DNA of 64,000 nt from contig JANHCV010000004.1 in the NCBI GenBank assembly GCA_025594325.1, positions 372,001-436,000 of the forward strand. The letters are read 5' to 3'. Source of the DNA: Blastocladiella emersonii ATCC 22665. Its lineage: Eukaryota; Fungi; Blastocladiomycota. Position numbers and translations under genes: made by a program. The notes beneath the pieces were generated by a model, which saw only the letters and a program-made list of their open reading frames with translations, was not told where the DNA came from and ran no database searches. Positions 3,274 through 26,949 of this stretch are shown here, piece after piece (position 1 is the first letter of the stretch; every line of letters begins with the position of its first letter).

Positions 3274-6200
3274 TCACACAGCGGCGCGACGCCGAGGAGG
3301 GAGAAACACGGACGGCCGGCGCCGACGGCGTGAATGGTCGAGCTTCTGCTGCTGCCACTCGCGCTGCTCGCGCTGCCGCAGCTGGGCCACCTCCGCTAGG
3401 AGCGCCACGACGACCCGCGGCAGCAACGGCGGACCGGCGCACGACACCCCGTCCCCCGCGTCGACGTCCATGCCGTCGTGGTCAAAGTCGGCGAGGTCAG
3501 CGGGCTGGGCGTTGGCGGGCTTAGCATCGGCGGGCTTAGCGTCGGCGGTGGTGGTGAACAGGCCCGTGATCATCTCGGGCGCCACGGCGCACAGCTTCGC
3601 GGCCATGGTGAGCTTGGCCGCAGCGTCGCACTGGCACGCGGGTCCAGTACCCGCGGTGTTCTCGTGGTTGTGGCGCGGGTCGCGCGGGTCGCGCGGGTCG
3701 CGGCCGTAGGGATACCCGGCCACGTACCCGCGACCGCCGTTGCGCGCACGGGTCGCCGCCGCCCGGGCCACCGCCGCCGCGATCTCGGCCTGCGATGGCG
3801 GCGGGTCGAGCCGCTGCACGTCGAGAAAAAACCGGCGGATCGCGGCCTTGGCGGGGTCCGGGAGCGAGATGATGGGCTTGGGCGCGAGCGAGTCGCGGAG
3901 GATCGACAGCAGCTGCTCGAACGTGTGGCGCCACGCGGGGGTTTGCTGCAGCGGGCACGGCGGGGATCGCGGGCAGGCACCGTCGCTGCCGCCGCCGACG
4001 CCGTGGGGGAGCGGCGCGAGCGGCGAAAAGTCGACGGCGCACGACGATAGGGTCGCGGGATTGCCGCCGCCGAGCGAGGCCACGACCATGCCCGAGAGGA
4101 GGAGGTCGGCCGCACCGCTGTCGGCAATCTGGTCGAGCACCTCCTGCTGGCGCCCCGCCACGGGCGACGCCGCACCGAGGACCTTGACGGTCAGCCGCAC
4201 GACGGACGGGTCGCTCAGCGTCGCGGCGAGGTAGGCGCGGGCGCCGGCCGCGGCGGCGGTGTCGCCCGAGTTGCGGTACGTGGCGGCCCGGTTGTTGCGC
4301 TCGCCTTGGCGTCGTCGTGGTGGTCGTGGTCGCAGTGGTCGCGGTCACGGTCGGCGACGCTGATGTACAGCGCGAGCACGACGCCGAACGTGTCCGACGC
4401 CGCCGTCGCCGCCCGGCTCGGGTCAAGGGCAGCCACGAGCACTTGCACGAGCGACAGCACCTGCAGTCGTTGCTGGCGGGCCAGGAACTCGCGGACCGCG
4501 ACGCCAAACCCCTCGTAGATGTCGAGGCAGCACCGGCGCAGCACCTCGGCGAACTGGTTGTCCGCGGGCACAAACTCGCGCAGCACCCGGATCGCGGTGG
4601 GCAGGTTGCGCGGCGCATCCGGACCCAGCATGGCGCTCCGTGCGAGCACTAGATAGCGACGATGGCGATAGCGGTGGGACCGGGCGGTTAGTGCTTGCAC
4701 GCGAGGAGGAGAAGCAGGAATAGAGCGGAGTGTTCGAGCCATCAGAGTCAGCAAAAGGAGCGAGGAAACTGTTGCGTACCCTCGCCGAGCGTCGTGGTCC
4801 ACCACACGGAGCACTGCTGCTGATGCTGGTTGAGGTGTCGCCGAAGCTGCGTGAGGTTGTTCTTCTCGAGGTTCGAGTACATGACGGCGGCCCACGAGTG
4901 CGGCCCAATGCCGACGTAACCCACCACGAGCGCGTGCGAGTTGATCAGCTGCTGGACAAATTCGACGCGGGTCGACAGCGCCGCGTCAAACCGCTCGCGC
5001 TGGCCCAGTGCCCGCGGATCGGACCCGTGGTAGCTGCTGGCGCTGCCCGGGTCGCAGGTCCCGCTCCAGTCGTGCGTCGTGAGCACGTCGAGCGACTGCC
5101 CGACGGCGCGAAACAGCTCCGGCGTGTCGGCGGGAGCCACCGACGACGGCAGGGCCTTGAGGTTGGCGAGGCCCTGGGCGAAGATGGGCTCGCGGGACAG
5201 GATCTCGCTGACGAGCGTCTGCGGGTTGGCGCGGCGGCAGCGCGCGTGGCGGGCCCACTGGACGACGTCGGTCCAGCCGTCGTGCAGGAAGCCGGGCCGG
5301 GCCGGGTACGGGTTGGCGAACCGCGCGAGGGCGGGCGCGTTCCACGACAGCGCCGCCAGCGCGCCAAAGAACTGGTATCCGCGGAAGAGGGGGACGGCCG
5401 ACGTCGAGCGCTGTTGGGCCATGGCCGCCCAGAGCACGCGAGCCGCGGGGTGGTTCTTGGCGAGGCCGACGAGCTTGAGCCACGCCTCCCACGACAGCTC
5501 CAGGTCACCGAGCAGCCACGCCACCACGTCGTCCGAGACCTTGAGCAGCGCGTCGAGGAGGTGCAGGTACGGGTGCCGGTGCTGGTACAGCAGCTGCTTT
5601 TGGCGCCGCTTCGCGTCCTCGTGCGGGGCGGCGGCCACGGCCGCGGCTGCGGCGCCGGTCGCGGGTCCGCCAGTGACCGCGAGGGCCAGCAGCCGCAGGT
5701 GCGTCACCAGCGCCATGGCGACGAGCTGCTCCGACAGCTGGACGGCGTCGTTGTTGTTGGTGCCGGTGCCGGTAGCGGGAGACGCCGACGCGCAGTCGCC
5801 GCGTGCGCGTGCCACGCCGTCGGAGATGAGCTGCGCGAGTCGGCGCAGGCGGAGCTGCTGTACGTCTGCGGGCAGATCACCGAAATGGGGTCCGGCACGC
5901 CCGCCCGCGTCCACGTCCATGAGGTCGCCGTCGCTGCTCTGCTCCCACGGGTCGACGCACGCGTCGTCCTCGCTCCAGATGGGGTTGCGCTTGCGCTTGC
6001 GCTTGCGCTCGGGCTCGCGCGTGGGCTCGGGATCGGGATCGAGATCGGGTTCGACGACCTTGGCGCGACCGAGGGCAGCCGTGTCGGCGGCGTCCTCGGC
6101 CTCGGCCAGGGCCGCGAGGTCCGCGACGGCGGCAGCCGCGGACGCAGCGTCCATGCCGTTGACGACCATGCGGAAGCCGGGCGACCGCATCACCGAGTCG

Positions 6201-6921
6201 ACCCACTCGGTGAGCTGCGAGACGACGTGACGGTGCTTGAGCTGCTGCGGCACGTTGCGGGCACGACTGCCCTGGGCGCCGTCGCGCAGCAGGTCTCGAA
6301 GGTACCGCCCGACTAGCAGCTCGGCAGCGTCCATGGCGGCACGCGAGTCGGCGGCATCGGCGGAGTGCGCAGCAGGGACGGCGTGGGCAGCGGGGCCGGG
6401 TGCGGGTGCGGGTACAGGGTCAGGACCTTGCGCTGGCGCGGGCTGCGGGTCGTCGTCGCCCGCGAGGATCTCGGCCGACAGCCGGTGCAGGGAGGCGATG
6501 ACGGACGCGGGCAGGACGGCGGCGGTCGAGGTGGATGCCGTAGCGGCAACCGCCGGGGCGCGCGGGAAGGGCAGGGCGGATGGCGCAGCGGTGAGATCGA
6601 CGGCCGAGTCCATGTGCGAGGAGGGACCATGGAGTTGCGGGTGCGGGGCAGCCGCTAGTGTAGGGGCGACAGCCTTGCGCGCCTTCTCGCGCTCCCGCTT
6701 CGCGCGGTTGCGCCGTTGCGACTTGGTCACATCAGCGGGAGAGAGAGCGGGAGCGGGAGATACGGATGCGGAAGCGCCGTCGCCATCGAGCGGCGGCGAC
6801 TCGTGGCCGAGTTCAGAAGCCTACGCGCAGGGTCACGAACAAGTCAGCAACGGAGTCCTGTTCGCATGCTGCGCGCGGGCCGTCGGGAGGGCAGACGAGC
6901 AAGATAGCGCGAACGTACCAT
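3274..6921 (-). CDS. Uncharacterised ~1,100-aa, probably helical protein, copy 1 (spliced; internal frame break near 4305)
   Basis: Mirror of the 22369..26016 model; host-like GC3 bias; no family recognised. Confidence 0.7.
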
Positions 6922-8403
6922 GGCGTTTGGACGTGGTACACGAGGCGCGTGTGTTGATGATGGGCAAAGTGATTGCGACGTGCGGAGGAGAGTGGAAGGG
7001 GCGGCGGGGCGAGGCGAAGCGTGTTCCGTTGTCGCGCCGCGTCGCACGGCCCAATCGAGTGCAAGGGCGAGGAAGGTAGAGAGGGGCGAGCAGCGCCCCG
7101 AGAGAGAGAGCGAGCAATCTGCGGGGTGCTGGCGCGGCGCGAGGCAGGGGCGAGCGAGGACACGCTGACATGGCGGCGCCCCCGGACGGCGCCCGGCCTG
7201 CCCTCAGGCGTGGGAGCAATGGTGGGAGACACACCGGCTGCGCGAGGCCGAGGCGGGCGGCCGAGCGACAGGCCCAGCGACCGCGGGGCGGAGGGGGCGG
7301 GTGGCGAGAGGATCGGGCTCGCCACGGCGATGATTCATGGTGAGCGGGCTTGTGCGGTAGTGGGGCGCAAGAGAGATTGACTGCTGACCGAAGACGAGGG
7401 CGAAGGTCGGTGGCCTGGTCGCTGGCGGCGGTCGGTTGGCGGTCGGTCGGCGGCGGCGGCGAGCGCAACGTGGGAAGGCGTGGCGCCGCCACACACGTGT
7501 TTGATCGACGCGTCTCTCACCTGGTCTCTCACCCCCGCTCGGCGACCACCACCACAACACCATTTCCTTGCCAGTATAGCCTCCCATCATCCCAAATGAC
7601 TGGTGGGGCGGAGGGCCGCGGTGTATGCGGATCGGAAGACATGAATCTCGCGCTCTTCGCACGCCAAAACACTTGCATGCGAGCAACCTCGGTTCTGTGG
7701 CTTTGAAATAGACAGCAGCATGCATTCCTTGTACTGAAGCAAGGTTTATCCCAATGCCGCTTGGGGTTGATTGAGATCGAGCCCTTGACACAAGACACCG
7801 CCAAGTCGAGCCGCTCGGACATGTACTTGGACGAGACGTTAAGATCCTCGAGGGAAGCAATCAAATGTAGTAGTAAACAACCCGCGTAACCTACAGGAAA
7901 ACATGGGCTGGCGGGCGGGACTCGTGGTGCTCTTGGCGCAGCGAGTCGATCTCCGTTTTCAGGCATCACAGGCGCATCGTGCCTGTCGTGTCGCCAACAA
8001 GAGCTCGACGATGTCCTTACCGTCTGCGTTGCGCAATATACTGAAATTTGAGAGCGCAAGCGAGTGTGGTTCCATGCACGCGGGACGGGGGCACGCGGGA
8101 GTTGCGTTGCTGCTCGTCGCCCCGCAACGTTCGACATCCGTACGCTCCTCTCACAGAAACGCAACTCCCTACCCCACATTGCTGTGTATTGAGTGAATAC
8201 GGCGCCAGGCGGGGCAAGCTCGCGGTGCGGTGAAGCATTTGGAGGGTGGTTGCGCCTTCAGATCGCGACCGCTAACGCTTGAGGGAAAGCCCTCCGTCGC
8301 CGCATTTACATTGCCCATGAAACCATTTCAATCCCACTGAAAGCCGCGGGAGGGAAGGCGATGCCGGCTCAACTCGCTACAAGAGAACCACTATCACGGG
8401 ATG

Positions 8404-8869
8404 CCGCGGCCCGCGGGGACTTGGCCAAAGTCCGCCTACCACAGATCGAAGGGTGCTAGTGGAGCGGGATCAGGCACCGTCGAATGGATCGTACTGGTAC
8501 GCCGCTGTAGGCTAAGGGCGCGTGTGAAAAGACGGGCGGCGAACTTTGGACAAAGGTTCAATCCCCGATCGAGCGCCGCCGCCAGGACGAGGGGTCGACG
8601 GGAGGGGCCGGGTTCGTAGCGAGGAAGCTAGCATCCTTTTGTTGCTGGCGCCGGTTCCGCTCCAGCCCGCTCCGCATGCTTGCGCAGGATTAAAGCGAGC
8701 AATGTTTTGGCCATTTTTTTTAGTTTTGTGAGGGTTCGGCGTCTCGTCTCGCGCGGGCGAGCGAGCGAGCGGGCGGGAGACACTGACGCGCGGCGACGCG
8801 TCGCGATATCGCGTGACCGCTGCGAGACGCGTTTTCACTCCACCTTACCTCACGTCGCCGGCCATCGAC
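8404..8869 (+). repeat. Repeat R, hybrid copy at the tandem junction
   Basis: Left flank as variant 2 (cacgggatg); 3' diagnostic bases as variant 1 (aatgttttgg). Confidence 0.88.
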
Positions 8870-9074
8870 ACGATCAACCTTGTTCCGCTGCCCGCGATCC
8901 TGAGAAGAACGCCCGAGATATGCGGAAGCAGCAAGTATGCAAAGAAGATGCCGAAGAGAGACCGTCGGTTGAGTTGTATGTGCTATGCCAGGTCGGGTCG
9001 GGTAGGGTAGGGAGGGAGAGTACGGGCGAGCGCAGAAGGCGGGCGAGCAGGGTAGTACACGGTGGAGGAGTCAA

Positions 9075-12000
9075 TCACACAGCGGCGCGACGCCGAGGAG
9101 GGAGAAACACGGACGGCCGGCGCCGACGGCGTGAATGGTCGAGCTTCTGCTGCTGCCACTCGCGCTGCTCGCGCTGCCGCAGCTGGGCCACCTCCGCTAG
9201 GAGCGCCACGACGACCCGCGGCAGCAACGGCGGACCGGCGCACGACACCCCGTCCCCCGCGTCGACGTCCATGCCGTCGTGGTCAAAGTCGGCGAGGTCA
9301 GCGGGCTGGGCGTTGGCGGGCTTAGCATCGGCGGGCTTAGCGTCGGCGGTGGTGGTGAACAGGCCCGTGATCATCTCGGGCGCCACGGCGCACAGCTTCG
9401 CGGCCATGGTGAGCTTGGCCGCAGCGTCGCACTGGCACGCGGGTCCAGTACCCGCGGTGTTCTCGTGGTTGTGGCGCGGGTCGCGCGGGTCGCGCGGGTC
9501 GCGGCCGTAGGGATACCCGGCCACGTACCCGCGACCGCCGTTGCGCGCACGGGTCGCCGCCGCCCGGGCCACCGCCGCCGCGATCTCGGCCTGCGATGGC
9601 GGCGGGTCGAGCCGCTGCACGTCGAGAAAAAACCGGCGGATCGCGGCCTTGGCGGGGTCCGGGAGCGAGATGATGGGCTTGGGCGCGAGCGAGTCGCGGA
9701 GGATCGACAGCAGCTGCTCGAACGTGTGGCGCCACGCGGGGGTTTGCTGCAGCGGGCACGGCGGGGATCGCGGGCAGGCACCGTCGCTGCCGCCGCCGAC
9801 GCCGTGGGGGAGCGGCGCGAGCGGCGAAAAGTCGACGGCGCACGACGATAGGGTCGCGGGATTGCCGCCGCCGAGCGAGGCCACGACCATGCCCGAGAGG
9901 AGGAGGTCGGCCGCACCGCTGTCGGCAATCTGGTCGAGCACCTCCTGCTGGCGCCCCGCCACGGGCGACGCCGCACCGAGGACCTTGACGGTCAGCCGCA
10001 CGACGGACGGGTCGCTCAGCGTCGCGGCGAGGTAGGCGCGGGCGCCGGCCGCGGCGGCGGTGTCGCCCGAGTTGCGGTACGTGGCGGCCCGGTTGTTGCG
10101 CTCGCCTTGGCGTCGTCGTGGTGGTCGTGGTCGCAGTGGTCGCGGTCACGGTCGGCGACGCTGATGTACAGCGCGAGCACGACGCCGAACGTGTCCGACG
10201 CCGCCGTCGCCGCCCGGCTCGGGTCAAGGGCAGCCACGAGCACTTGCACGAGCGACAGCACCTGCAGTCGTTGCTGGCGGGCCAGGAACTCGCGGACCGC
10301 GACGCCAAACCCCTCGTAGATGTCGAGGCAGCACCGGCGCAGCACCTCGGCGAACTGGTTGTCCGCGGGCACAAACTCGCGCAGCACCCGGATCGCGGTG
10401 GGCAGGTTGCGCGGCGCATCCGGACCCAGCATGGCGCTCCGTGCGAGCACTAGATAGCGACGATGGCGATAGCGGTGGGACCGGGCGGTTAGTGCTTGCA
10501 CGCGAGGAGGAGAAGCAGGAATAGAGCGGAGTGTTCGAGCCATCAGAGTCAGCAAAAGGAGCGAGGAAACTGTTGCGTACCCTCGCCGAGCGTCGTGGTC
10601 CACCACACGGAGCACTGCTGCTGATGCTGGTTGAGGTGTCGCCGAAGCTGCGTGAGGTTGTTCTTCTCGAGGTTCGAGTACATGACGGCGGCCCACGAGT
10701 GCGGCCCAATGCCGACGTAACCCACCACGAGCGCGTGCGAGTTGATCAGCTGCTGGACAAATTCGACGCGGGTCGACAGCGCCGCGTCAAACCGCTCGCG
10801 CTGGCCCAGTGCCCGCGGATCGGACCCGTGGTAGCTGCTGGCGCTGCCCGGGTCGCAGGTCCCGCTCCAGTCGTGCGTCGTGAGCACGTCGAGCGACTGC
10901 CCGACGGCGCGAAACAGCTCCGGCGTGTCGGCGGGAGCCACCGACGACGGCAGGGCCTTGAGGTTGGCGAGGCCCTGGGCGAAGATGGGCTCGCGGGACA
11001 GGATCTCGCTGACGAGCGTCTGCGGGTTGGCGCGGCGGCAGCGCGCGTGGCGGGCCCACTGGACGACGTCGGTCCAGCCGTCGTGCAGGAAGCCGGGCCG
11101 GGCCGGGTACGGGTTGGCGAACCGCGCGAGGGCGGGCGCGTTCCACGACAGCGCCGCCAGCGCGCCAAAGAACTGGTATCCGCGGAAGAGGGGGACGGCC
11201 GACGTCGAGCGCTGTTGGGCCATGGCCGCCCAGAGCACGCGAGCCGCGGGGTGGTTCTTGGCGAGGCCGACGAGCTTGAGCCACGCCTCCCACGACAGCT
11301 CCAGGTCACCGAGCAGCCACGCCACCACGTCGTCCGAGACCTTGAGCAGCGCGTCGAGGAGGTGCAGGTACGGGTGCCGGTGCTGGTACAGCAGCTGCTT
11401 TTGGCGCCGCTTCGCGTCCTCGTGCGGGGCGGCGGCCACGGCCGCGGCTGCGGCGCCGGTCGCGGGTCCGCCAGTGACCGCGAGGGCCAGCAGCCGCAGG
11501 TGCGTCACCAGCGCCATGGCGACGAGCTGCTCCGACAGCTGGACGGCGTCGTTGTTGTTGGTGCCGGTGCCGGTAGCGGGAGACGCCGACGCGCAGTCGC
11601 CGCGTGCGCGTGCCACGCCGTCGGAGATGAGCTGCGCGAGTCGGCGCAGGCGGAGCTGCTGTACGTCTGCGGGCAGATCACCGAAATGGGGTCCGGCACG
11701 CCCGCCCGCGTCCACGTCCATGAGGTCGCCGTCGCTGCTCTGCTCCCACGGGTCGACGCACGCGTCGTCCTCGCTCCAGATGGGGTTGCGCTTGCGCTTG
11801 CGCTTGCGCTCGGGCTCGCGCGTGGGCTCGGGATCGGGATCGAGATCGGGTTCGACGACCTTGGCGCGACCGAGGGCAGCCGTGTCGGCGGCGTCCTCGG
11901 CCTCGGCCAGGGCCGCGAGGTCCGCGACGGCGGCAGCCGCGGACGCAGCGTCCATGCCGTTGACGACCATGCGGAAGCCGGGCGACCGCATCACCGAGTC

Positions 12001-12722
12001 GACCCACTCGGTGAGCTGCGAGACGACGTGACGGTGCTTGAGCTGCTGCGGCACGTTGCGGGCACGACTGCCCTGGGCGCCGTCGCGCAGCAGGTCTCGA
12101 AGGTACCGCCCGACTAGCAGCTCGGCAGCGTCCATGGCGGCACGCGAGTCGGCGGCATCGGCGGAGTGCGCAGCAGGGACGGCGTGGGCAGCGGGGCCGG
12201 GTGCGGGTGCGGGTACAGGGTCAGGACCTTGCGCTGGCGCGGGCTGCGGGTCGTCGTCGCCCGCGAGGATCTCGGCCGACAGCCGGTGCAGGGAGGCGAT
12301 GACGGACGCGGGCAGGACGGCGGCGGTCGAGGTGGATGCCGTAGCGGCAACCGCCGGGGCGCGCGGGAAGGGCAGGGCGGATGGCGCAGCGGTGAGATCG
12401 ACGGCCGAGTCCATGTGCGAGGAGGGACCATGGAGTTGCGGGTGCGGGGCAGCCGCTAGTGTAGGGGCGACAGCCTTGCGCGCCTTCTCGCGCTCCCGCT
12501 TCGCGCGGTTGCGCCGTTGCGACTTGGTCACATCAGCGGGAGAGAGAGCGGGAGCGGGAGATACGGATGCGGAAGCGCCGTCGCCATCGAGCGGCGGCGA
12601 CTCGTGGCCGAGTTCAGAAGCCTACGCGCAGGGTCACGAACAAGTCAGCAACGGAGTCCTGTTCGCATGCTGCGCGCGGGCCGTCGGGAGGGCAGACGAG
12701 CAAGATAGCGCGAACGTACCAT
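9075..12722 (-). CDS. Uncharacterised ~1,100-aa protein, copy 2
   Basis: Tandem copy at +5801. Confidence 0.7.
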
Positions 12723-14204
12723 GGCGTTTGGACGTGGTACACGAGGCGCGTGTGTTGATGATGGGCAAAGTGATTGCGACGTGCGGAGGAGAGTGGAAGG
12801 GGCGGCGGGGCGAGGCGAAGCGTGTTCCGTTGTCGCGCCGCGTCGCACGGCCCAATCGAGTGCAAGGGCGAGGAAGGTAGAGAGGGGCGAGCAGCGCCCC
12901 GAGAGAGAGAGCGAGCAATCTGCGGGGTGCTGGCGCGGCGCGAGGCAGGGGCGAGCGAGGACACGCTGACATGGCGGCGCCCCCGGACGGCGCCCGGCCT
13001 GCCCTCAGGCGTGGGAGCAATGGTGGGAGACACACCGGCTGCGCGAGGCCGAGGCGGGCGGCCGAGCGACAGGCCCAGCGACCGCGGGGCGGAGGGGGCG
13101 GGTGGCGAGAGGATCGGGCTCGCCACGGCGATGATTCATGGTGAGCGGGCTTGTGCGGTAGTGGGGCGCAAGAGAGATTGACTGCTGACCGAAGACGAGG
13201 GCGAAGGTCGGTGGCCTGGTCGCTGGCGGCGGTCGGTTGGCGGTCGGTCGGCGGCGGCGGCGAGCGCAACGTGGGAAGGCGTGGCGCCGCCACACACGTG
13301 TTTGATCGACGCGTCTCTCACCTGGTCTCTCACCCCCGCTCGGCGACCACCACCACAACACCATTTCCTTGCCAGTATAGCCTCCCATCATCCCAAATGA
13401 CTGGTGGGGCGGAGGGCCGCGGTGTATGCGGATCGGAAGACATGAATCTCGCGCTCTTCGCACGCCAAAACACTTGCATGCGAGCAACCTCGGTTCTGTG
13501 GCTTTGAAATAGACAGCAGCATGCATTCCTTGTACTGAAGCAAGGTTTATCCCAATGCCGCTTGGGGTTGATTGAGATCGAGCCCTTGACACAAGACACC
13601 GCCAAGTCGAGCCGCTCGGACATGTACTTGGACGAGACGTTAAGATCCTCGAGGGAAGCAATCAAATGTAGTAGTAAACAACCCGCGTAACCTACAGGAA
13701 AACATGGGCTGGCGGGCGGGACTCGTGGTGCTCTTGGCGCAGCGAGTCGATCTCCGTTTTCAGGCATCACAGGCGCATCGTGCCTGTCGTGTCGCCAACA
13801 AGAGCTCGACGATGTCCTTACCGTCTGCGTTGCGCAATATACTGAAATTTGAGAGCGCAAGCGAGTGTGGTTCCATGCACGCGGGACGGGGGCACGCGGG
13901 AGTTGCGTTGCTGCTCGTCGCCCCGCAACGTTCGACATCCGTACGCTCCTCTCACAGAAACGCAACTCCCTACCCCACATTGCTGTGTATTGAGTGAATA
14001 CGGCGCCAGGCGGGGCAAGCTCGCGGTGCGGTGAAGCATTTGGAGGGTGGTTGCGCCTTCAGATCGCGACCGCTAACGCTTGAGGGAAAGCCCTCCGTCG
14101 CCGCATTTACATTGCCCATGAAACCATTTCAATCCCACTGAAAGCCGCGGGAGGGAAGGCGATGCCGGCTCAACTCGCTACAAGAGAACCACTATCACGG
14201 GATG

Positions 14205-14669
14205 CCGCGGCCCGCGGGGACTTGGCCAAAGTCCGCCTACCACAGATCGAAGGGTGCTAGTGGAGCGGGATCAGGCACCGTCGAATGGATCGTACTGGTA
14301 CGCCGCTGTAGGCTAAGGGCGCGTGTGAAAAGACGGGCGGCGAACTTTGGACAAAGGTTCAATCCCCGATCGAGCGCCGCCGCCAGGACGAGGGGTCGAC
14401 GGGAGGGGCCGGGTTCGTAGCGAGGAAGCTAGCATCCTTTTGTTGCTGGCGCCGGTTCCGCTCCAGCCCGCTCCGCATGCTTGCGCAGGATTAAAGCGAG
14501 CAATTTCTTTGGCCATTTTTTTAGTTTGTGAGGGTTCGGCGTCTCGTCTCGCGCGGGCGAGCGAGCGGGTGGGCGGGAGACACTGACGCGCGGCGACGCG
14601 TCGCGATATCGCGTGACCGCTGCGAGACGCGTTTTCACTTCACCTTACCTCACGTCGCCGGCCATCGAC
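14205..14669 (+). repeat. Repeat R, variant 2
   Basis: Differs from variant 1 at several sites from 14505 on (aatttctttgg, shorter T runs, cgggtggg, cacttcacc); followed by Helitron sequence. Confidence 0.9.
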
Positions 14670-15491
14670 CGTTTCAACGATCCCATGTCGCCATGGCCGT
14701 TGAATAGCTGCAGCTGGCCTTCACCGTGCTCTTCGCTTTCGGATCCGCTTTCACCGCGGCGGCGCGGAACTTGCGTCGTAGCTGGAGCCGAGTTGTTGGC
14801 CTCAAACTCTTCCGCCAGCTTGCCGGGCGACGTTTTGACGCACGACTTGAAATCTCCCCCGATGGGATCGTCTGGGTCATGCTGCTTGAGCTCCGCGACG
14901 TACGCGTCGAGCTGGGTCAAGAACGTTGAGTGCTGTGGCGGAATGAGCTCACGCGGTGTCGTGGAACAGCTCAAACAGGATGAGAGCGATGAGCGCACGC
15001 GACTCGGCGGCTCCAATATCGGCGGGCTGCGACAGCTTCTTGTTGAACAGCGGGACCGGAACGTCGCGCTTTGGGCGTTTTGCGATCCGCAGTGTCTTGG
15101 TTTGTGGATGCGTATCGCGGAAGTAGTACCGATCTTCCTTGTGCCGACCACGCTTAGTGGGCGACACTGCACCAGGTCTTACGCCATCGCGTGGCCGATC
15201 ACGTCCTTGTTCGTCTTTGGGGATGGCCTCGAACCGAAACTGCTGGACCAGCTCGTAGAGCGAGAGGTCGCGCTTGGACTTGACCACGTTCCCGTTACCG
15301 TCCTGCGTCTCGACCATCAGGAGGTCGTCGTCGCGGTGGATGTAGTGGTCAATGATGGAGACCTTATCGGCAGTTGGTCGATTGGTAAAATTGACGGTCT
15401 CCTTGTTGTGCAATGCCAATCCGCTGGGGCCGGTGGAATCGTCGGCGAGCTCCTCCTCCTCTCCTCTATTTCCTCGCTGTCGTCATCGTCG
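14670..15491 (-). mobile_element. Helitron RepHel mid-region fragment (duplicated in the left arm)
   Basis: HYIHRDDDL...SLYELVQQF...THPQT...DVPV...ESRALIALILF resembles the linker between Rep and helicase in fungal Helitrons; mirror of 19600..20421. Confidence 0.7.
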
Positions 15492-15492
15492 A

Positions 15493-15515
15493 CTAGCGGT
15501 GTGTGCTTTGCACAC
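15493..15515 (-). mobile_element. Helitron-type 3' terminus: hairpin GTGTGC-AAA-GCACAC, 4 nt, CTAG, then T
   Basis: Minus strand reads gagtgtgcaaagcacacaccgCTAGt, ~165 bp downstream of the helicase stop; fits the hairpin + CTRR|T rule for Helitron ends. Confidence 0.7.
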
Positions 15516-15659
15516 TCTGTCTCAGCAGTAGGCAAGTCGGCCGGCCAGTGACTGCTGAAGCCGATTCGGCCGATCGCGGACTAAGTCATGTGCTGGTATG
15601 ATGTACCAAAATTAACATGACTAAAACATCTACTACGTGGTGGTTGCTTCCGATAGCTC

Positions 15660-17070
15660 TCAAAGTCGCGCGTACTCCGCAAGTATGTGTTCATCCTGCG
15701 TTTGCGTCAGTCCTTGAACGCCAGGGTCGCGCAGGATGAGGACGTCCTCGCCGCGTCGCGCACGAGAAAGGATCACGTACAGGAAACGCGAACGGAGCGA
15801 TCCGTGCGTCATGTCGGCGAGCCCAACGACGACCTTATCCAAATTCATTTCTTGGGCCTTGTGCGCCGTCAGCGCGTACGCGAGCTCGAGCGGGAACTGA
15901 GCTCGATGGATCGTCTTGGATATCCCGAGCAACTTGTTCTTGAGGCGGAACGACGTGGTCTCCCTGCGCAGTGGGAAGCAACCGTCGGGATGCCCGGGAG
16001 CTTGGGCATGCGACCCAGATCCTTATCTGGCCGAACAATGATTGCGTCAATGTCATTGTTTGCGTCGGTGCCGAAGACGCCGTTCACGATCCCACGACTA
16101 CGCGATGCGAAGCCCACAATAGCTGGTTAGTTGACGCGTTGTTGGGTCCGTTAATATGACGCGTTGACGTACGGCGTGTTGATGTTCCGCGTCACGATGA
16201 TACGTGCGTCAGCGAACAGCTTGAGGCTCAATGGAATGTGGTCAGTCTTGCTTGAGGGAAGCAGTTTCGCACAGTTGAACAGGCGCTGGTCACTGTCGTT
16301 CTGGCCGCTGCTCTCGATGACGAGCTGCCGCCAAAGGAGTGGTCCAGTTGCCGAGGGCTTGCGGACGAGATCGATGCAATCGAGGTCGAAGATCTCGTCA
16401 GGCTGAAGCCCGAGGCACCGCGCGTGTTTCGCGGCGGCCATCGTGTTCCACGAGTCACGCACCGATTTCTGCGCTGTGATGGGCGCCTGGTCGCTCCAGT
16501 CGTCCAGTCGCCGAGCTGCTCTGGATGGTGGCCCAGCACGATGTCCGCTCAACCCGACCCGAGGTACTCGATCACGCGCTGCGATACGACGCAGTTACGC
16601 AGGTCCTGGAGCACGTTGAGGAACTCCGCGTCGCCCGACTGCCGCATCTGCTGGACGAGGAAGAAGACCGAGTCGGAGGTGAGCCATTGATCGCGACCAA
16701 TGTTGGCGTCAGTTCGAGCTCTGCTGACCGCTGGCCGCTCCTTGCCCTTGGACGCGCGTTTTTTCTTTTTCTGCTGCCGAGTTTCGCTGTCGACCTGAAT
16801 CGAGTTTTCATCATGAGTCCCGTCCACCTCGCGCTCCAGTTCGCGCTTGACCAGCTGTTCGGATGGAACCGCGAGTGAGCGCGCCATGCCGGGCTTGAAC
16901 TGGAAAAGGTCGCCGAACTCGAGGAAGTTCAGGCCGCCAAACGGGCGAGAGTCGCGGCTCGGGTACAGCGTGTCAAAGCGCAAATGCATGGCGGCAAAGA
17001 GCCCTGCCGCTGAGCGTGGACATCTTGTCGATGGGAACAAACTGGACAATTCGGTTGAGACCTCGCGGGA
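15660..17070 (-). pseudogene. Helitron Pif1-family (SF1B) helicase, frameshifted, lacking Walker A
   Basis: Degenerate Walker B IDKMSTLS; FGGLNFLEFGDLFQFKP; QQMRQSGDAEFLNVLQDLR; LKLFADARIIVTRNIN; QFPLELAYALTAHKAQ; LYVILSRAR; motifs spread over several frames. Confidence 0.9.
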
Positions 17071-18399
17071 TGATGCTTTCTATGGTGCCAACCTAGTTGC
17101 ATAGAGTGGCCGAGTAGTATTCTATTGGAGGATTTAGAGAGAATTGAGGAAAAGGTAATTCGATTGAATGGACGTCGCGTGGCGCGACGCGTCGCGGTGC
17201 ATCACGTGAGAAACAGTACGATCTTGAGCTCATCGATAGCCCAGCTTGACGCGGAATTCAGCTCGACGGGAACTCAGCCCTTACTGCTGAGAATAATCAG
17301 CTCGAAACTCGGCAAAACTCGGCAATAGTGCAAAGCAACAACAAAAAAAAGGTGGATGGATGACACCGCCGACTGGGTACCCCTCAGCAGCGTACCGGAG
17401 GAGCATCGCGCGGGTTAATGATGGGATTCGAACCCTGGTGCGCGATCTCCACTTTCCCCTGCGTTGAAGCCCAGACCGACGGCAACAGCCGCCCTCCATT
17501 GGCGCGGGCGCACCGCGCACCAACAGGCTACGCGCCGTGCTCCCTCGCGCCGCTCCTCGACTCTGATGACGAGTGCTGCCGCAACGGCGCCCGCCGACGC
17601 GCGTTGGTTCTGGCCGACGCGGCAGTCGCACGGCGCCGCGGCGGCGGCAGCCTCGCCTCGTACCCCGCGCTTCGTGTCGCCCGCCCGCTACTCGTCCGTC
17701 CGGACGGGATCCCCTGCGGTGCTGACGACCCCGAGGAGCGCCATTTCGATCATGTACACGGCGCGTGGGCCAAGATTGATGAGGGCCTGCGTCTCGGCGG
17801 TTGGCGCACAGCCGAGGGCCCGGCGGAAGGTGAGCTGGGCGCGCCATCTCAGTTGGTGTAGGGAATCCGTGCACGCCACGCGCCCCGGCCCTCTGAGCGA
17901 GGGGACCTCGTCCGAGGTTTCCTAGCTCATGGTCGGCGCGCGGTGGGTGTGCGGCGGCTCCGTCGTGGGGCAGGCTCAGCTCATGGCCTGCTTTTGCCGT
18001 GGCGGACGGGGCCGTCGCTCTGGTCGAGAAGGTGGAGTCAGGAACGATGCGCGCTTGGACCCTTCGCGCAGCCGCCCTCAACTCGCTCTCGTGCGCCCAG
18101 CCCTTGAGGTCTCTTCCGAAATTGCTGTAATGAGCTCCCCCCTAGGTTTCTCTCTCGTTTGGTGTCTGTGTGGTTTTGTTGAGATTCAAGCACGTGGAAT
18201 AGATGTGCAATGAACAAAAAATGAAGATCGACGGCAACACCTGCCCGACATCTAACGTGATCAAACCTTTACAAGTAACCACCAGAGATGCCGAGCGACA
18301 CGGGCCCAGCGGCACGGCCACCGGCGCGCGCTATCCTCGGTGCCAGACTAATAGCTCTGACTCTCGTTCAAGTCCCCGACTCCTCGCATTGGCCTCAGC

Positions 18400-20421
18400 T
18401 CAGTGCAAGTAAAATCCCGACACTACTTCATCGATACGGCGGCTTGTTTGGACGTCTTCGAGGACGCGGCAAGCTGGAGCATCGCTGGAGCGGTCGCTCG
18501 CTGGTGTCTCCATTGCTGCGCCACCTGCCCGCGCCACCCGCTGAGCCACCACTCATCGACGACCCCGACCCCGCCTGCAGCACCATCGGGAACCCCCTTC
18601 GACCGCTTACACGCGACAGACGGCGCAGCATGAAACTCGTGTAAAATCATCACCAGGGCGCGTTATTCAGCTCGCACGACACGGCAACGCGTCCCAGATG
18701 CCCGGTAAAATCTGGTTCTTGCCAACATCGCCTTGGCCAACGTGCACGGCTCACCGAGTTGGCTCCAGTCGAAACGTTAAGAGCTGCTTGCCAGCATCAT
18801 CGATCGCGGGCTGCCAGCCTTTTTCGTCACGCTGAACCCGCACGACGTCAACTCGCCCATTGCGCTCATGTCGGGTCTGTCCGCCAAAAAAGTCACCGAC
18901 ATCCATGGTCGCGTCGGCAGGGAGCACTACCGCCGCGTCTTCGCTGCCGAGGACCCTGTCGCTGTCGCGCGGTACTTTGACCTGCTCGTCACAACGACCG
19001 TCAAAGACATGATTGTCGGCACGCCCAATAGACCAGGTGTGCTCGGTCCCGTTTTGGGGTACATCGGCACGGTCGAGGCGCAGGGGCGCGGCTCGCTTCA
19101 TGCTCACGCCTCCATCTGGGCGAGCGGTGTGTCATCGCAGACTGAAATCGCCACCGTTCTTGACAAAGCCACCAACGAGTACAATGCATTTCTCTGTCCA
19201 AAGCGGCACCATCACTGGGTCAACCCGTACAACGGCTGGATCATCTCGGCGCTGCGGTTGAGCATGAACATTTGGCCGCTCATGGTGACCTCCAGGAACC
19301 CGGCCAACATCATCTACTCCGTGACCAACTACATTGCCAAGACTCCGCCGCCGACGTACAACACCTACGCCCTGCTCGAACACCTCCACGCCATCATGGA
19401 GCGGGCGGTAAAACAGTAACGTACCGATCCCACTCACTCTCGGCGCTGTCGTCCGCGGTCTAGTCAACTGTTCCACGACCTCGCGTGAGCCTTTCGGGCA
19501 GCAGGTTGCGCATGACCTGCTTCGCAGCGAGAAGCACAGGCCGCTCCGTGAAATGGACAAGCTGCTCGCGCAGCGGCCCGAACAATATAAACCAGAAAAC
19601 GACGATGACGACAGCGAGGAAATAGAGGAGAGGAGGAGGAGCTCGCCGACGATTCCACCGGCCCCAGCGGATTGGCATTGCACAACAAGGAGACCGTCAA
19701 TTTTACCAATCGACCAACTGCCGATAAGGTCTCCATCATTGACCACTACATCCACCGCGACGACGACCTCCTGATGGTCGAGACGCAGGACGGTAACGGG
19801 AACGTGGTCAAGTCCAAGCGCGACCTCTCGCTCTACGAGCTGGTCCAGCAGTTTCGGTTCGAGGCCATCCCCAAAGACGAACAAGGACGTGATCGGCCAC
19901 GCGATGGCGTAAGACCTGGTGCAGTGTCGCCCACTAAGCGTGGTCGGCACAAGGAAGATCGGTACTACTTCCGCGATACGCATCCACAAACCAAGACACT
20001 GCGGATCGCAAAACGCCCAAAGCGCGACGTTCCGGTCCCGCTGTTCAACAAGAAGCTGTCGCAGCCCGCCGATATTGGAGCCGCCGAGTCGCGTGCGCTC
20101 ATCGCTCTCATCCTGTTTGAGCTGTTCCACGACACCGCGTGAGCTCATTCCGCCACAGCACTCAACGTTCTTGACCCAGCTCGACGCGTACGTCGCGGAG
20201 CTCAAGCAGCATGACCCAGACGATCCCATCGGGGGAGATTTCAAGTCGTGCGTCAAAACGTCGCCCGGCAAGCTGGCGGAAGAGTTTGAGGCCAACAACT
20301 CGGCTCCAGCTACGACGCAAGTTCCGCGCCGCCGCGGTGAAAGCGGATCCGAAAGCGAAGAGCACGGTGAAGGCCAGCTGCAGCTATTCAACGGCCATGG
20401 CGACATGGGATCGTTGAAACG
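18400..20421 (+). pseudogene. Helitron Rep (Helitron_like_N / HUH endonuclease) plus mid-region, with premature stops
   Basis: GLPAFFVTLNPHDVNSP; EDPVAVARYF; GVLGPVLGYIGTVEAQGRGSLHAHASIW (HUH, ~19072-19120); WVNPYN; TNYIAK (YxxK, ~19330); TAA stops at 18778 and 19417; possible 43-nt intron 19421-19463. Confidence 0.92.
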
Positions 20422-20886
20422 GTCGATGGCCGGCGACGTGAGGTAAGGTGAAGTGAAAACGCGTCTCGCAGCGGTCACGCGATATCGCGACGCGTCGCCG
20501 CGCGTCAGTGTCTCCCGCCCACCCGCTCGCTCGCCCGCGCGAGACGAGACGCCGAACCCTCACAAACTAAAAAAATGGCCAAAGAAATTGCTCGCTTTAA
20601 TCCTGCGCAAGCATGCGGAGCGGGCTGGAGCGGAACCGGCGCCAGCAACAAAAGGATGCTAGCTTCCTCGCTACGAACCCGGCCCCTCCCGTCGACCCCT
20701 CGTCCTGGCGGCGGCGCTCGATCGGGGATTGAACCTTTGTCCAAAGTTCGCCGCCCGTCTTTTCACACGCGCCCTTAGCCTACAGCGGCGTACCAGTACG
20801 ATCCATTCGACGGTGCCTGATCCCGCTCCACTAGCACCCTTCGATCTGTGGTAGGCGGACTTTGGCCAAGTCCCCGCGGGCCGCGG
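20422..20886 (-). repeat. Repeat R, variant 2, inverted
   Basis: Reverse complement of 14205..14669. Confidence 0.9.
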
Positions 20887-22368
20887 CATCCCGTGATAGT
20901 GGTTCTCTTGTAGCGAGTTGAGCCGGCATCGCCTTCCCTCCCGCGGCTTTCAGTGGGATTGAAATGGTTTCATGGGCAATGTAAATGCGGCGACGGAGGG
21001 CTTTCCCTCAAGCGTTAGCGGTCGCGATCTGAAGGCGCAACCACCCTCCAAATGCTTCACCGCACCGCGAGCTTGCCCCGCCTGGCGCCGTATTCACTCA
21101 ATACACAGCAATGTGGGGTAGGGAGTTGCGTTTCTGTGAGAGGAGCGTACGGATGTCGAACGTTGCGGGGCGACGAGCAGCAACGCAACTCCCGCGTGCC
21201 CCCGTCCCGCGTGCATGGAACCACACTCGCTTGCGCTCTCAAATTTCAGTATATTGCGCAACGCAGACGGTAAGGACATCGTCGAGCTCTTGTTGGCGAC
21301 ACGACAGGCACGATGCGCCTGTGATGCCTGAAAACGGAGATCGACTCGCTGCGCCAAGAGCACCACGAGTCCCGCCCGCCAGCCCATGTTTTCCTGTAGG
21401 TTACGCGGGTTGTTTACTACTACATTTGATTGCTTCCCTCGAGGATCTTAACGTCTCGTCCAAGTACATGTCCGAGCGGCTCGACTTGGCGGTGTCTTGT
21501 GTCAAGGGCTCGATCTCAATCAACCCCAAGCGGCATTGGGATAAACCTTGCTTCAGTACAAGGAATGCATGCTGCTGTCTATTTCAAAGCCACAGAACCG
21601 AGGTTGCTCGCATGCAAGTGTTTTGGCGTGCGAAGAGCGCGAGATTCATGTCTTCCGATCCGCATACACCGCGGCCCTCCGCCCCACCAGTCATTTGGGA
21701 TGATGGGAGGCTATACTGGCAAGGAAATGGTGTTGTGGTGGTGGTCGCCGAGCGGGGGTGAGAGACCAGGTGAGAGACGCGTCGATCAAACACGTGTGTG
21801 GCGGCGCCACGCCTTCCCACGTTGCGCTCGCCGCCGCCGCCGACCGACCGCCAACCGACCGCCGCCAGCGACCAGGCCACCGACCTTCGCCCTCGTCTTC
21901 GGTCAGCAGTCAATCTCTCTTGCGCCCCACTACCGCACAAGCCCGCTCACCATGAATCATCGCCGTGGCGAGCCCGATCCTCTCGCCACCCGCCCCCTCC
22001 GCCCCGCGGTCGCTGGGCCTGTCGCTCGGCCGCCCGCCTCGGCCTCGCGCAGCCGGTGTGTCTCCCACCATTGCTCCCACGCCTGAGGGCAGGCCGGGCG
22101 CCGTCCGGGGGCGCCGCCATGTCAGCGTGTCCTCGCTCGCCCCTGCCTCGCGCCGCGCCAGCACCCCGCAGATTGCTCGCTCTCTCTCTCGGGGCGCTGC
22201 TCGCCCCTCTCTACCTTCCTCGCCCTTGCACTCGATTGGGCCGTGCGACGCGGCGCGACAACGGAACACGCTTCGCCTCGCCCCGCCGCCCCTTCCACTC
22301 TCCTCCGCACGTCGCAATCACTTTGCCCATCATCAACACACGCGCCTCGTGTACCACGTCCAAACGCC

Positions 22369-25300
22369 ATGGTACGTTCGCGCTATCTTGCTCGTCTGCC
22401 CTCCCGACGGCCCGCGCGCAGCATGCGAACAGGACTCCGTTGCTGACTTGTTCGTGACCCTGCGCGTAGGCTTCTGAACTCGGCCACGAGTCGCCGCCGC
22501 TCGATGGCGACGGCGCTTCCGCATCCGTATCTCCCGCTCCCGCTCTCTCTCCCGCTGATGTGACCAAGTCGCAACGGCGCAACCGCGCGAAGCGGGAGCG
22601 CGAGAAGGCGCGCAAGGCTGTCGCCCCTACACTAGCGGCTGCCCCGCACCCGCAACTCCATGGTCCCTCCTCGCACATGGACTCGGCCGTCGATCTCACC
22701 GCTGCGCCATCCGCCCTGCCCTTCCCGCGCGCCCCGGCGGTTGCCGCTACGGCATCCACCTCGACCGCCGCCGTCCTGCCCGCGTCCGTCATCGCCTCCC
22801 TGCACCGGCTGTCGGCCGAGATCCTCGCGGGCGACGACGACCCGCAGCCCGCGCCAGCGCAAGGTCCTGACCCTGTACCCGCACCCGCACCCGGCCCCGC
22901 TGCCCACGCCGTCCCTGCTGCGCACTCCGCCGATGCCGCCGACTCGCGTGCCGCCATGGACGCTGCCGAGCTGCTAGTCGGGCGGTACCTTCGAGACCTG
23001 CTGCGCGACGGCGCCCAGGGCAGTCGTGCCCGCAACGTGCCGCAGCAGCTCAAGCACCGTCACGTCGTCTCGCAGCTCACCGAGTGGGTCGACTCGGTGA
23101 TGCGGTCGCCCGGCTTCCGCATGGTCGTCAACGGCATGGACGCTGCGTCCGCGGCTGCCGCCGTCGCGGACCTCGCGGCCCTGGCCGAGGCCGAGGACGC
23201 CGCCGACACGGCTGCCCTCGGTCGCGCCAAGGTCGTCGAACCCGATCTCGATCCCGATCCCGAGCCCACGCGCGAGCCCGAGCGCAAGCGCAAGCGCAAG
23301 CGCAACCCCATCTGGAGCGAGGACGACGCGTGCGTCGACCCGTGGGAGCAGAGCAGCGACGGCGACCTCATGGACGTGGACGCGGGCGGGCGTGCCGGAC
23401 CCCATTTCGGTGATCTGCCCGCAGACGTACAGCAGCTCCGCCTGCGCCGACTCGCGCAGCTCATCTCCGACGGCGTGGCACGCGCACGCGGCGACTGCGC
23501 GTCGGCGTCTCCCGCTACCGGCACCGGCACCAACAACAACGACGCCGTCCAGCTGTCGGAGCAGCTCGTCGCCATGGCGCTGGTGACGCACCTGCGGCTG
23601 CTGGCCCTCGCGGTCACTGGCGGACCCGCGACCGGCGCCGCAGCCGCGGCCGTGGCCGCCGCCCCGCACGAGGACGCGAAGCGGCGCCAAAAGCAGCTGC
23701 TGTACCAGCACCGGCACCCGTACCTGCACCTCCTCGACGCGCTGCTCAAGGTCTCGGACGACGTGGTGGCGTGGCTGCTCGGTGACCTGGAGCTGTCGTG
23801 GGAGGCGTGGCTCAAGCTCGTCGGCCTCGCCAAGAACCACCCCGCGGCTCGCGTGCTCTGGGCGGCCATGGCCCAACAGCGCTCGACGTCGGCCGTCCCC
23901 CTCTTCCGCGGATACCAGTTCTTTGGCGCGCTGGCGGCGCTGTCGTGGAACGCGCCCGCCCTCGCGCGGTTCGCCAACCCGTACCCGGCCCGGCCCGGCT
24001 TCCTGCACGACGGCTGGACCGACGTCGTCCAGTGGGCCCGCCACGCGCGCTGCCGCCGCGCCAACCCGCAGACGCTCGTCAGCGAGATCCTGTCCCGCGA
24101 GCCCATCTTCGCCCAGGGCCTCGCCAACCTCAAGGCCCTGCCGTCGTCGGTGGCTCCCGCCGACACGCCGGAGCTGTTTCGCGCCGTCGGGCAGTCGCTC
24201 GACGTGCTCACGACGCACGACTGGAGCGGGACCTGCGACCCGGGCAGCGCCAGCAGCTACCACGGGTCCGATCCGCGGGCACTGGGCCAGCGCGAGCGGT
24301 TTGACGCGGCGCTGTCGACCCGCGTCGAATTTGTCCAGCAGCTGATCAACTCGCACGCGCTCGTGGTGGGTTACGTCGGCATTGGGCCGCACTCGTGGGC
24401 CGCCGTCATGTACTCGAACCTCGAGAAGAACAACCTCACGCAGCTTCGGCGACACCTCAACCAGCATCAGCAGCAGTGCTCCGTGTGGTGGACCACGACG
24501 CTCGGCGAGGGTACGCAACAGTTTCCTCGCTCCTTTTGCTGACTCTGATGGCTCGAACACTCCGCTCTATTCCTGCTTCTCCTCCTCGCGTGCAAGCACT
24601 AACCGCCCGGTCCCACCGCTATCGCCATCGTCGCTATCTAGTGCTCGCACGGAGCGCCATGCTGGGTCCGGATGCGCCGCGCAACCTGCCCACCGCGATC
24701 CGGGTGCTGCGCGAGTTTGTGCCCGCGGACAACCAGTTCGCCGAGGTGCTGCGCCGGTGCTGCCTCGACATCTACGAGGGGTTTGGCGTCGCGGTCCGCG
24801 AGTTCCTGGCCCGCCAGCAACGACTGCAGGTGCTGTCGCTCGTGCAAGTGCTCGTGGCTGCCCTTGACCCGAGCCGGGCGGCGACGGCGGCGTCGGACAC
24901 GTTCGGCGTCGTGCTCGCGCTGTACATCAGCGTCGCCGACCGTGACCGCGACCACTGCGACCACGACCACCACGACGACGCCAAGGCGAGCGCAACAACC
25001 GGGCCGCCACGTACCGCAACTCGGGCGACACCGCCGCCGCGGCCGGCGCCCGCGCCTACCTCGCCGCGACGCTGAGCGACCCGTCCGTCGTGCGGCTGAC
25101 CGTCAAGGTCCTCGGTGCGGCGTCGCCCGTGGCGGGGCGCCAGCAGGAGGTGCTCGACCAGATTGCCGACAGCGGTGCGGCCGACCTCCTCCTCTCGGGC
25201 ATGGTCGTGGCCTCGCTCGGCGGCGGCAATCCCGCGACCCTATCGTCGTGCGCCGTCGACTTTTCGCCGCTCGCGCCGCTCCCCCACGGCGTCGGCGGCG

Positions 25301-26016
25301 GCAGCGACGGTGCCTGCCCGCGATCCCCGCCGTGCCCGCTGCAGCAAACCCCCGCGTGGCGCCACACGTTCGAGCAGCTGCTGTCGATCCTCCGCGACTC
25401 GCTCGCGCCCAAGCCCATCATCTCGCTCCCGGACCCCGCCAAGGCCGCGATCCGCCGGTTTTTTCTCGACGTGCAGCGGCTCGACCCGCCGCCATCGCAG
25501 GCCGAGATCGCGGCGGCGGTGGCCCGGGCGGCGGCGACCCGTGCGCGCAACGGCGGTCGCGGGTACGTGGCCGGGTATCCCTACGGCCGCGACCCGCGCG
25601 ACCCGCGCGACCCGCGCCACAACCACGAGAACACCGCGGGTACTGGACCCGCGTGCCAGTGCGACGCTGCGGCCAAGCTCACCATGGCCGCGAAGCTGTG
25701 CGCCGTGGCGCCCGAGATGATCACGGGCCTGTTCACCACCACCGCCGACGCTAAGCCCGCCGATGCTAAGCCCGCCAACGCCCAGCCCGCTGACCTCGCC
25801 GACTTTGACCACGACGGCATGGACGTCGACGCGGGGGACGGGGTGTCGTGCGCCGGTCCGCCGTTGCTGCCGCGGGTCGTCGTGGCGCTCCTAGCGGAGG
25901 TGGCCCAGCTGCGGCAGCGCGAGCAGCGCGAGTGGCAGCAGCAGAAGCTCGACCATTCACGCCGTCGGCGCCGGCCGTCCGTGTTTCTCCCTCCTCGGCG
26001 TCGCGCCGCTGTGTGA
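22369..26016 (+). CDS. Uncharacterised ~1,100-aa protein, copy 3
   Basis: ATG 22369, intron 22372-22469 (GTACGT...GCTGAC...TAG) joins in frame to the 660-aa ORF. Intron 24511-24641 (GTACGC...CTAAC...TAG) joins to the 226-aa ORF. A -1 frame break near 24985 leads into the 308-aa ORF. Confidence 0.72.
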
Positions 26017-26221
26017 TTGACTCCTCCACCGTGTACTACCCTGCTCGCCCGCCTTCTGCGCTCGCCCGTACTCTCCCTCCCTACCCTACCCGACCCGACC
26101 TGGCATAGCACATACAACTCAACCGACGGTCTCTCTTCGGCATCTTCTTTGCATACTTGCTGCTTCCGCATATCTCGGGCGTTCTTCTCAGGATCGCGGG
26201 CAGCGGAACAAGGTTGATCGT

Positions 26222-26687
26222 GTCGATGGCCGGCGACGTGAGGTAAGGTGGAGTGAAAACGCGTCTCGCAGCGGTCACGCGATATCGCGACGCGTCGCCG
26301 CGCGTCAGTGTCTCCCGCCCGCTCGCTCGCTCGCCCGCGCGAGACGAGACGCCGAACCCTCACAAAACTAAAAAAAATGGCCAAAACATTGCTCGCTTTA
26401 ATCCTGCGCAAGCATGCGGAGCGGGCTGGAGCGGAACCGGCGCCAGCAACAAAAGGATGCTAGCTTCCTCGCTACGAACCCGGCCCCTCCCGTCGACCCC
26501 TCGTCCTGGCGGCGGCGCTCGATCGGGGATTGAACCTTTGTCCAAAGTTCGCCGCCCGTCTTTTCACACGCGCCCTTAGCCTACAGCGGCGTACCAGTAC
26601 GATCCATTCGACGGTGCCTGATCCCGCTCCACTAGCACCCTTCGATCTGTGGTAGGCGGACTTTGGCCAAGTCCCCGCGGGCCGCGG
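26222..26687 (-). repeat. Repeat R, variant 1, inverted
   Basis: Reverse complement of 2603..3068. Confidence 0.9.
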
Positions 26688-26949
26688 GCCACGGACATCC
26701 CGCAACACCAACACACGCGCACACGAACAATGCAAAGGGAGAATAAGATCGTCTTGAGTGTATCGAGTGGGAGAGAGGGAGAGGAGGAGGAGCGAGAAGC
26801 CACGGCGCAGCCGGGCTCTCGACACACAATGGAATATGCACAAAATCGACAATGGAGGGAGAGCCGCGCCTGCGACTCATGCGCACGGCCAGCCGTACAC
26901 GCACACGTCGCAAACAACTCACGCAGCAGCAGCAGCAACGCCATGAAAC

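Follow-up and report, generated by a model that had tools for sequence, protein, structure and literature searches.

A chromosomal palindrome of 29.8 kb lies in a 64,000-nucleotide stretch of the genome of Blastocladiella emersonii ATCC 22665, hereafter the window (contig JANHCV010000004.1 of the single assembly GCA_025594325.1, window base 1 being record base 372001). The arms are 100% identical and pair inward as far as 15491 and 19600, their exact inner limit; a T would be required at 19599 for longer pairing, and that base is A. Between them lies a kilobase-sized, single-copy spacer of 4108 bp without internal inverted repeat. This spacer contains two Helitrons, namely X and an older, degenerate, Rep-bearing element Y. 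The features of the locus are as follows.

1..15491, plus 255 bp beyond the window start: left arm, 15,747 bp in total, its outer end taken from L006/L007
14679..15491, minus strand: innermost left arm, an inverted copy of the coding mid region of Helitron Y, not host DNA
15492, minus strand: single T between CTAG and the arm
15493..17293, minus strand: Helitron X, 1801 bp, complete but internally deleted, Helitron2-like and non-autonomous, with both family termini
15493..15515, minus strand: 3′ terminus of X, with hairpin (15501-15515), ACCG (15497-15500) and CTAG (15493-15496)
15520..15530, minus strand: 3′ subterminal inverted repeat (ATIR) of X, complementary to the X 5′ end
15663..17079, minus strand: Pif1-like helicase remnant of X, the C-terminal two thirds in four frame-shifted pieces
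17282..17293, minus strand: 5′ terminus of X, (T)TCTCAGCAGTA, starting with TC
17294..18726: segment S, between X and Y, partly a genome-wide repeat
18727..19416, plus strand: Rep (HUH endonuclease) domain of Helitron Y (PF14214 Helitron_like_N, E = 3.7e-18), degenerate and 5′-truncated relative to P0004
19412..20383, plus strand: linker/mid region of Y, unbroken across the right arm boundary 19599/19600
19600..29545: right arm, 9946 bp, adjoining the Y Rep and hence the template copy
29546..29643: degraded outer edge, which has an 11-bp indel and ~87% identity to DNA lying left of the window

Helitron X and the termini of its family

A first-pass annotation had read the minus strand as a helicase ending at 15660, followed by a hairpin, accg, CTAG and a T, with the arm starting at the next base, 15491 (paired with 19600), and with A at 19599; this reading stands base for base. 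The helicase ORF stops at 15660-15662 and is followed by a 167-bp tail, and the hairpin gtgtgc-aaa-gcacac has a 6-bp stem and an AAA loop. When the arm-proximal ORF was used for a profile-free search, ten proteins were recovered at E <= 0.001, and their loci gave five more 3′ ends in the same assembly (L001 twice, L003, L004 and L005); two of these, L001b and L005, are duplicates of one insertion with the same flank. At least the last 36 nt, ...CTGCTGAGACAGAGTGTG(C/T)AACGCACACACCCCTAG, are common to X and all five copies (with CGAG in L003), similarity among the copies is gone directly past CTAG, and in four of these five a T comes next. The suggestion of the same annotation that hairpin and CTAG form the true 3′ terminus of the family is borne out by these five aligned genomic copies, which diverge right after CTAG. 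Folding predicts the hairpin, but the terminus is supported by this conservation and not by folding energy, as the 3′ end of X folds no more stably than shuffled sequence (z = -0.9).

At the opposite end, alignable similarity to L001a, L004, L002 and L005 begins at the X 5′ terminus (17292/17293), and the upstream flanks are unrelated. The family signatures are hairpin-ACCS-CTAG at the 3′ terminus and TTCTCAGCAGTA at the 5′ terminus. The ATIR of X shows 11/11 complementarity between 17282-17292 and 15520-15530 and extends to 14 nt in other copies; such repeats have been described for Helitron2-type fungal Helitrons (PMC5148889). The body of X is ~81% identical to the copies in L001 and L003-L005. 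Its helicase pieces share 66-86% amino-acid identity with P0005 and P0009, both of which contain PF05970 (PIF1), and give a weak match to UvrD_C_2. The relatives P0004, P0005 and P0007 carry PF14214 together with PF05970; X keeps only helicase remnants and is therefore regarded as non-autonomous. Further copies of X or Y are absent from the window.

X is flanked by a T on each side, as are other insertions of the family, and the T at 15492 is either a host (target) base or the last base of X itself. The insertion behaviour of the family can be seen on JANHCV010000014.1, where two paralogous segments (L001:1-6331 and L005:4528-9859) lie ~140 kb apart in inverted orientation. They hold two different Helitron insertions 7 bp apart, CCGCTG^TTGATTA^TACATC, each segment being the empty site of the other's insertion, and comparison of these two related copies shows insertion to be precise save for one extra T at the occupied sites. 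A third segment shared by the two loci (L001 14932-18278 = L005 10671-14017, 99.4%) duplicates a Helitron and 2 kb of its 3′ flank.

Helitron Y and the arms of the palindrome

The Rep domain of Y is collinear with L002 10791-11912 and lacks the first ~145 residues of P0004. Its frame continues past Rep in ORFs 19412-19771, which spans the arm boundary, 19609-20139 and 19913-20443, and the pieces align collinearly, on both sides of the boundary, with the linker that separates the Rep tyrosine motif from the helicase in P0003, P0004, P0005 and P0007. The partner point of the left arm had been placed in a Rep-mid region, and it does lie inside the Helitron Rep-to-helicase linker: 19599/19600 falls between ...KPEN and DDDDSEE..., within an acidic stretch that all relatives possess there. 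A read contig of 2320 nt runs from 18162 to ~20481 and is unbroken across 19600. The right boundary was considered as a breakpoint and rejected because the Y ORF and the motif order are continuous; 19599/19600 thus reads as no junction at all, the sole new joint being the left one. Since Y is continuous here, only one joint is new and the Y-side arm is the template copy. This single novel joint is X-CTAG-T fused to an inverted copy of Y starting from 19600.

Helicase and Rep had earlier been taken for one element. This assignment, with the idea of a single split Helitron, was given up, because X is complete with its own 5′ end at 17292/17293 and Y is a separate, more divergent copy, its mid region having 36-44% amino-acid identity to the family versus 66-86% for the X helicase. 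Nothing in the Y partner site, GAAAA|CGACG, marks it as a place of Rep cleavage or likens it to the T-flanked targets of the family; it lacks a T flank and resembles neither family terminus. A candidate pseudo-terminus at this site, a weak TTCT match two bases off and on the opposite strand, is unconvincing. An inverted relic of the Y Rep was not found in the spacer by word-7 blastn or relaxed tblastn.

The left arm equals the right arm plus one additional 5801-bp tandem unit, flanked by the 475-bp repeat r; the inverted pairs, both 100% identical, are 1-8726/20564-29289 and 8404-15491/19600-26687. Besides the mid region of Y and repeats r, the right arm contains two genes, an orphan and a subtilisin (26953-28176, minus strand; intronless, Peptidase_S8). 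In tblastn, P0004, P0005, P0007 and P0009 match at 15404-14708 and also at 19687-20383, and the innermost 0.8 kb of both arms is accordingly assigned, by similarity, to Helitron Y and not to host DNA. The view that host genes were amplified holds in part: the arms do carry whole host genes, the subtilisin among them, and it does not hold for the inner start of the arm, which is 0.8 kb of Helitron coding sequence.

Segment S resembles neither the arms nor repeat r nor inverted Y, and a relation between r and S was dismissed on this ground. Read contigs over window 17200-18180 have loose ends and, at 95-99% identity, differ at numerous positions, which indicates a multi-copy repeat family. Just beyond the 5′ end of X, at ~17340-17480 on the minus strand, there are a T8 run and a motif resembling a B box, GGTTCGAATCC; a tRNA or SINE identity of this unit was rejected, as neither ARAGORN nor Rfam gave a match. 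Outside the palindrome, the window contains a 191-bp inverted pair of 97% identity, 25 kb apart (30552-30742 and 55570-55760). Its right copy lies at the edge of a block of lower GC (~50-56 kb; 0.57-0.60 versus 0.65-0.72 around it), the large ORFs of which have no Pfam match.

The two edges of the palindrome differ. The inner edge is sharp and identical to the final base, in contrast with the outer edge, where identity is 100% up to window -255/29545, then ~87% over ~100 bp, and then lost. Near-perfect arms beside older, diverged sequence, the pattern of a palindrome maintained by conversion, are found at this outer edge. Because the edge has decayed beside otherwise identical arms, an older palindrome is suggested, and the arms may have been kept uniform by arm-to-arm conversion (copy-correction); alternatively, an older short inverted homology may have served the return switch there. 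At the outer edge (L006:8521-8607 and L007:8510-8607; window ~-342..-256 and 29546-29643), one arm has GCGACCGAGAAC followed by GACTGAGAAC and the other a single unit, which means an 11-bp tandem duplication or deletion precisely at the onset of perfect identity. No further copy of the outer-edge sequence, as would mark a dispersed repeat, occurs among the loci examined.

Explanations for the joint at the tip of Helitron X

The X terminus lies 0 or 1 bp from the only new joint of the palindrome, the distance depending on whether the T at 15492 belongs to X or to the host. A 55-nt terminal repeat is present at ~70x single-copy depth, or ~70 copies in the 34-Mb genome, and from depth and genome size we ourselves estimate a probability of ~6e-6 that any of these ~70 termini would lie no more than 1 bp away from a given boundary. 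A chance coincidence is therefore very unlikely, and the arrangement points to a link between the tip of X and the duplication, either of which may, as far as one assembly can tell, have come first.

The sequence itself shows how the locus is built, where the family terminates, that Y is continuous and that the outer edge is degraded; a break, its cause and an order of events are what we infer. Our preference, which is a tentative one, goes to a break at the 3′ end of X that was repaired by copying an inverted template. First, a break at this terminus, a Rep nick site where a hairpin might also stall replication forks, would leave a DNA end. Second, sequence close by would be copied from this end in the inverted direction, through a fold-back or template switch or, where an older palindrome already existed, through break-induced copying of its other arm; in the break-induced version, the older arm would have been lengthened inward to an arbitrary point in Y. 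Third, copying would begin at an arbitrary point of Y and continue away from the spacer, across the host genes, until the old outer edge was reached, and the joint would be sealed by end joining without microhomology. The break is supported by the fact that Rep nicks after CTAG, leaving a free 3′-OH there (PMC4778049), where X also has its hairpin, and by the kilobase-sized single-copy spacer bounded by the break, which matches fold-back inverted duplications (PMC3907307). A recent inner-edge event in an older structure also fits a perfect inner and a ~87% identical outer edge.

Several observations weigh against a break at the X 3′ end. It is a single locus, and the contigs give no read-level proof of the left joint. 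Microhomology between CTAGT and GAAAA is 0 bp, and should the T at 15492 belong to the host, the joint would be 1 bp past the Rep cleavage site. Neither a near-identical twin of X nor an intact Rep close to it was seen, which leaves recent nicking at X putative. An inverted duplicate of the flank was found within 10 kb of none of the five other copies. Moreover, a second Helitron-centred palindrome of this genome, in L002, has boundaries that are not termini.

An unlikely but serious alternative is that the palindrome came first, ending at ...GATTA-T|CGACG..., and that X was later inserted at its boundary or 1 bp from it. Both termini of X are intact with a T on each side, as in ordinary insertions of the family, the empty and occupied sites of L001 and L005 demonstrate precise insertion plus one T, and the flank TTAT|T/C resembles the targets reported for Helitron2 and FoHeli (PMC5148889). 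The degraded outer edge also suggests that the palindrome is old. Such a hit could have been chance, or the HUH transposase could have acted on the single-stranded base of an extruded stem-loop, which would suit a Rep that cleaves only single-stranded DNA (PMC4778049). However, a chance strike on one specific base pair is very improbable, the preference for a stem-loop base is speculation, and the difference between a perfect inner and a decayed outer edge is left unexplained. We know of no precedent for a transposon that prefers the bases of stem-loops.

It is improbable that the left joint, or the entire inverted copy, was made by the assembler. The assembly was built with the La Jolla Assembler from PacBio HiFi reads (mean 10.5 kb, ~185x) and polished with Pilon (PMC9730499). 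Three runs containing the region, all from one sample and probably the Illumina and HiFi data of PMC9730499 itself, were examined as contigs; these fragment inside the multi-copy Helitron and can show presence, not absence. Of the words sampled from 15250-15750, 92-94% are present in the contigs of all three; two sampled 31-mers spanning the left joint occur in the contigs of none of the three and a junction-only 60-mer matched no run, results to be read with that limit on absence. These missing words, the unbranched read contig across 19600 and the complete identity of the arms would all be expected of an artefact. Nevertheless, a random chimera would not land exactly on a conserved transposon terminus, and HiFi reads of 10.5 kb at 185x suffice to span the spacer and both joints. 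In two runs the contig 18162-20481 is ~1.35x as deep as single-copy spacer contigs (55.5 versus ~41; 172 versus ~127), close to the ~1.38x that two genomic copies of its arm part would give. A one-copy path beside a ~70-copy repeat is presumably the kind of link that contig simplification typically loses, and the decay of the outer edge has the look of evolution, not of a technical fault.

Public gene models join Helitron fragments to their neighbours: in P0001, splicing crosses the palindrome joint and links the X helicase with the mid region of inverted Y. P0001 and P0002 in the window and P0008 of L001:10001-15766 are all fused Helitron pieces, P0008 combining a 1200-aa host protein with a Helitron mid region and helicase.

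The mechanism proposed in the first-pass annotation, in which Rep would transfer the 3′-OH of X into Y, nicked either on the opposite strand or on the sister chromatid, and replication would complete the copy, now seems quite improbable. The joint does lie at a Rep cleavage/ligation site, and if the true end of X is CTAGT it is exact, with A|C as target, a minor target dinucleotide of Helraiser (PMC4778049). On the other hand, the Y site is unlike family termini or T-flanked targets, X has retained its own 5′ end and flank, and a second switch would still be required at the outer edge. The decayed outer edge is ill-suited to a single recent event; it suggests an older palindrome more than one fresh transposition. 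Strand transfer into 19599/19600 finds no breakpoint in Y, and as the partner site is featureless and microhomology absent, Rep transfer is no better supported than break repair. In the locus sequence examined there is no sign that a Rep protein made the left joint. Lastly, insertion of X inside a once longer left arm of inverted Y, followed by deletion from the X 5′ end to segment S, would automatically make the homology stop where a transposon terminates and yet is highly improbable, because the native Y site has no T while all family copies are T-flanked, the deletion endpoint must coincide exactly with the X 5′ terminus, and the inverted Y Rep has left no trace.

Known parallels and meaning for Blastocladiella emersonii

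X resembles the Helitron2-type FoHeli elements of Fusarium oxysporum in its 5′ TC, 3′ hairpin, T-rich flanks and precise insertion (the last seen in related copies), in an ATIR whose 3′ copy lies ~25 nt upstream of the tip, and in a family where non-autonomous deletion derivatives occur beside Rep-Hel copies (PMC5148889). Unlike FoHeli, X has the tip CTAG of canonical Helitron1 and a blastoclad host, and its likeness to Helitron2 is one of termini. Arms around a kilobase-sized single-copy spacer, with one end corresponding to the initiating break, are also found in the fold-back inverted duplications of human constitutional rearrangements (PMC3907307) and in those induced by double-strand breaks in yeast (PMC10622511). 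The human duplications have a median spacer of 3.4 kb, and a minority of their junctions contain an insertion instead of microhomology (PMC3907307). The B. emersonii case differs from them in being interstitial, since normal DNA flanks it on either outer side and there is neither a terminal deletion nor a dicentric chromosome, in its zero microhomology, and in a break point that would be set by a transposon terminus.

The locus shares with mammalian sex-chromosome amplicons arms of 100% identity over ~10 kb, whole genes, a unique spacer and one decayed edge; it departs from them in that a Helitron tip defines the inner edge, one arm has an extra tandem unit and conversion is only putative. As in one-ended transposition of IS91 and alternative transposition of maize Ac/Ds, a transposon end lies exactly at the joint and adjacent host DNA is duplicated. 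Unlike the products of those systems, both ends of X are in place and the partner site is not target-like. A full-text search of a limited literature collection returned no paper linking Helitrons to the formation of palindromes or inverted duplications.

B. emersonii appears to be rich in both Helitrons and palindromes. Among five loci fetched at random, one, L002:3827-22776 (JANHCV010000010.1, ~627-646 kb), has a palindrome centred on Helitron copies, with arms of 7415 bp (99.93%) and a spacer of 4120 bp, near the 4108 bp of the X/Y locus; its arms include a 781-aa host gene, a Helitron 5′ part and Rep. It was rejected as a second terminus-bounded case, because its inner boundaries lie inside Rep coding sequence. 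At L004:15952-21174 (JANHCV010000009.1), a Helitron copy has giant-virus-type genes beside it, with PF04665 (Pox_A32 packaging ATPase) and a faint DUF5906 upstream, and this gene run suggests an endogenous large DNA virus region.

The locus is best described as an inverted duplication, or palindrome, associated with a transposon end; it is a single case with ambiguous causality. What the first-pass annotation observed is confirmed and sharpened, and its interpretation is partly supported. It is a rather unlikely proposition that Rep nicks at Helitron 3′ termini, or forks stalled by their hairpins, recurrently seed or extend the arms of many gene-bearing palindromes in B. emersonii. If it were true, rolling-circle transposons would multiply complete host genes in the form of inverted duplications, with no need to capture them. 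Helitrons are known for the capture of gene fragments, and palindromes have been described in sex chromosomes, in cancers and in yeast models of break repair. A Helitron tip at the sole new joint of a gene-bearing palindrome would connect both fields and would supply a natural, sequence-defined initiating lesion for inverted duplication, as well as a way for a rolling-circle transposon to duplicate entire host genes. If the palindrome came first instead, the locus would hint at the targeting of a transposon to the stem-loop base of a palindrome, which would also be new.
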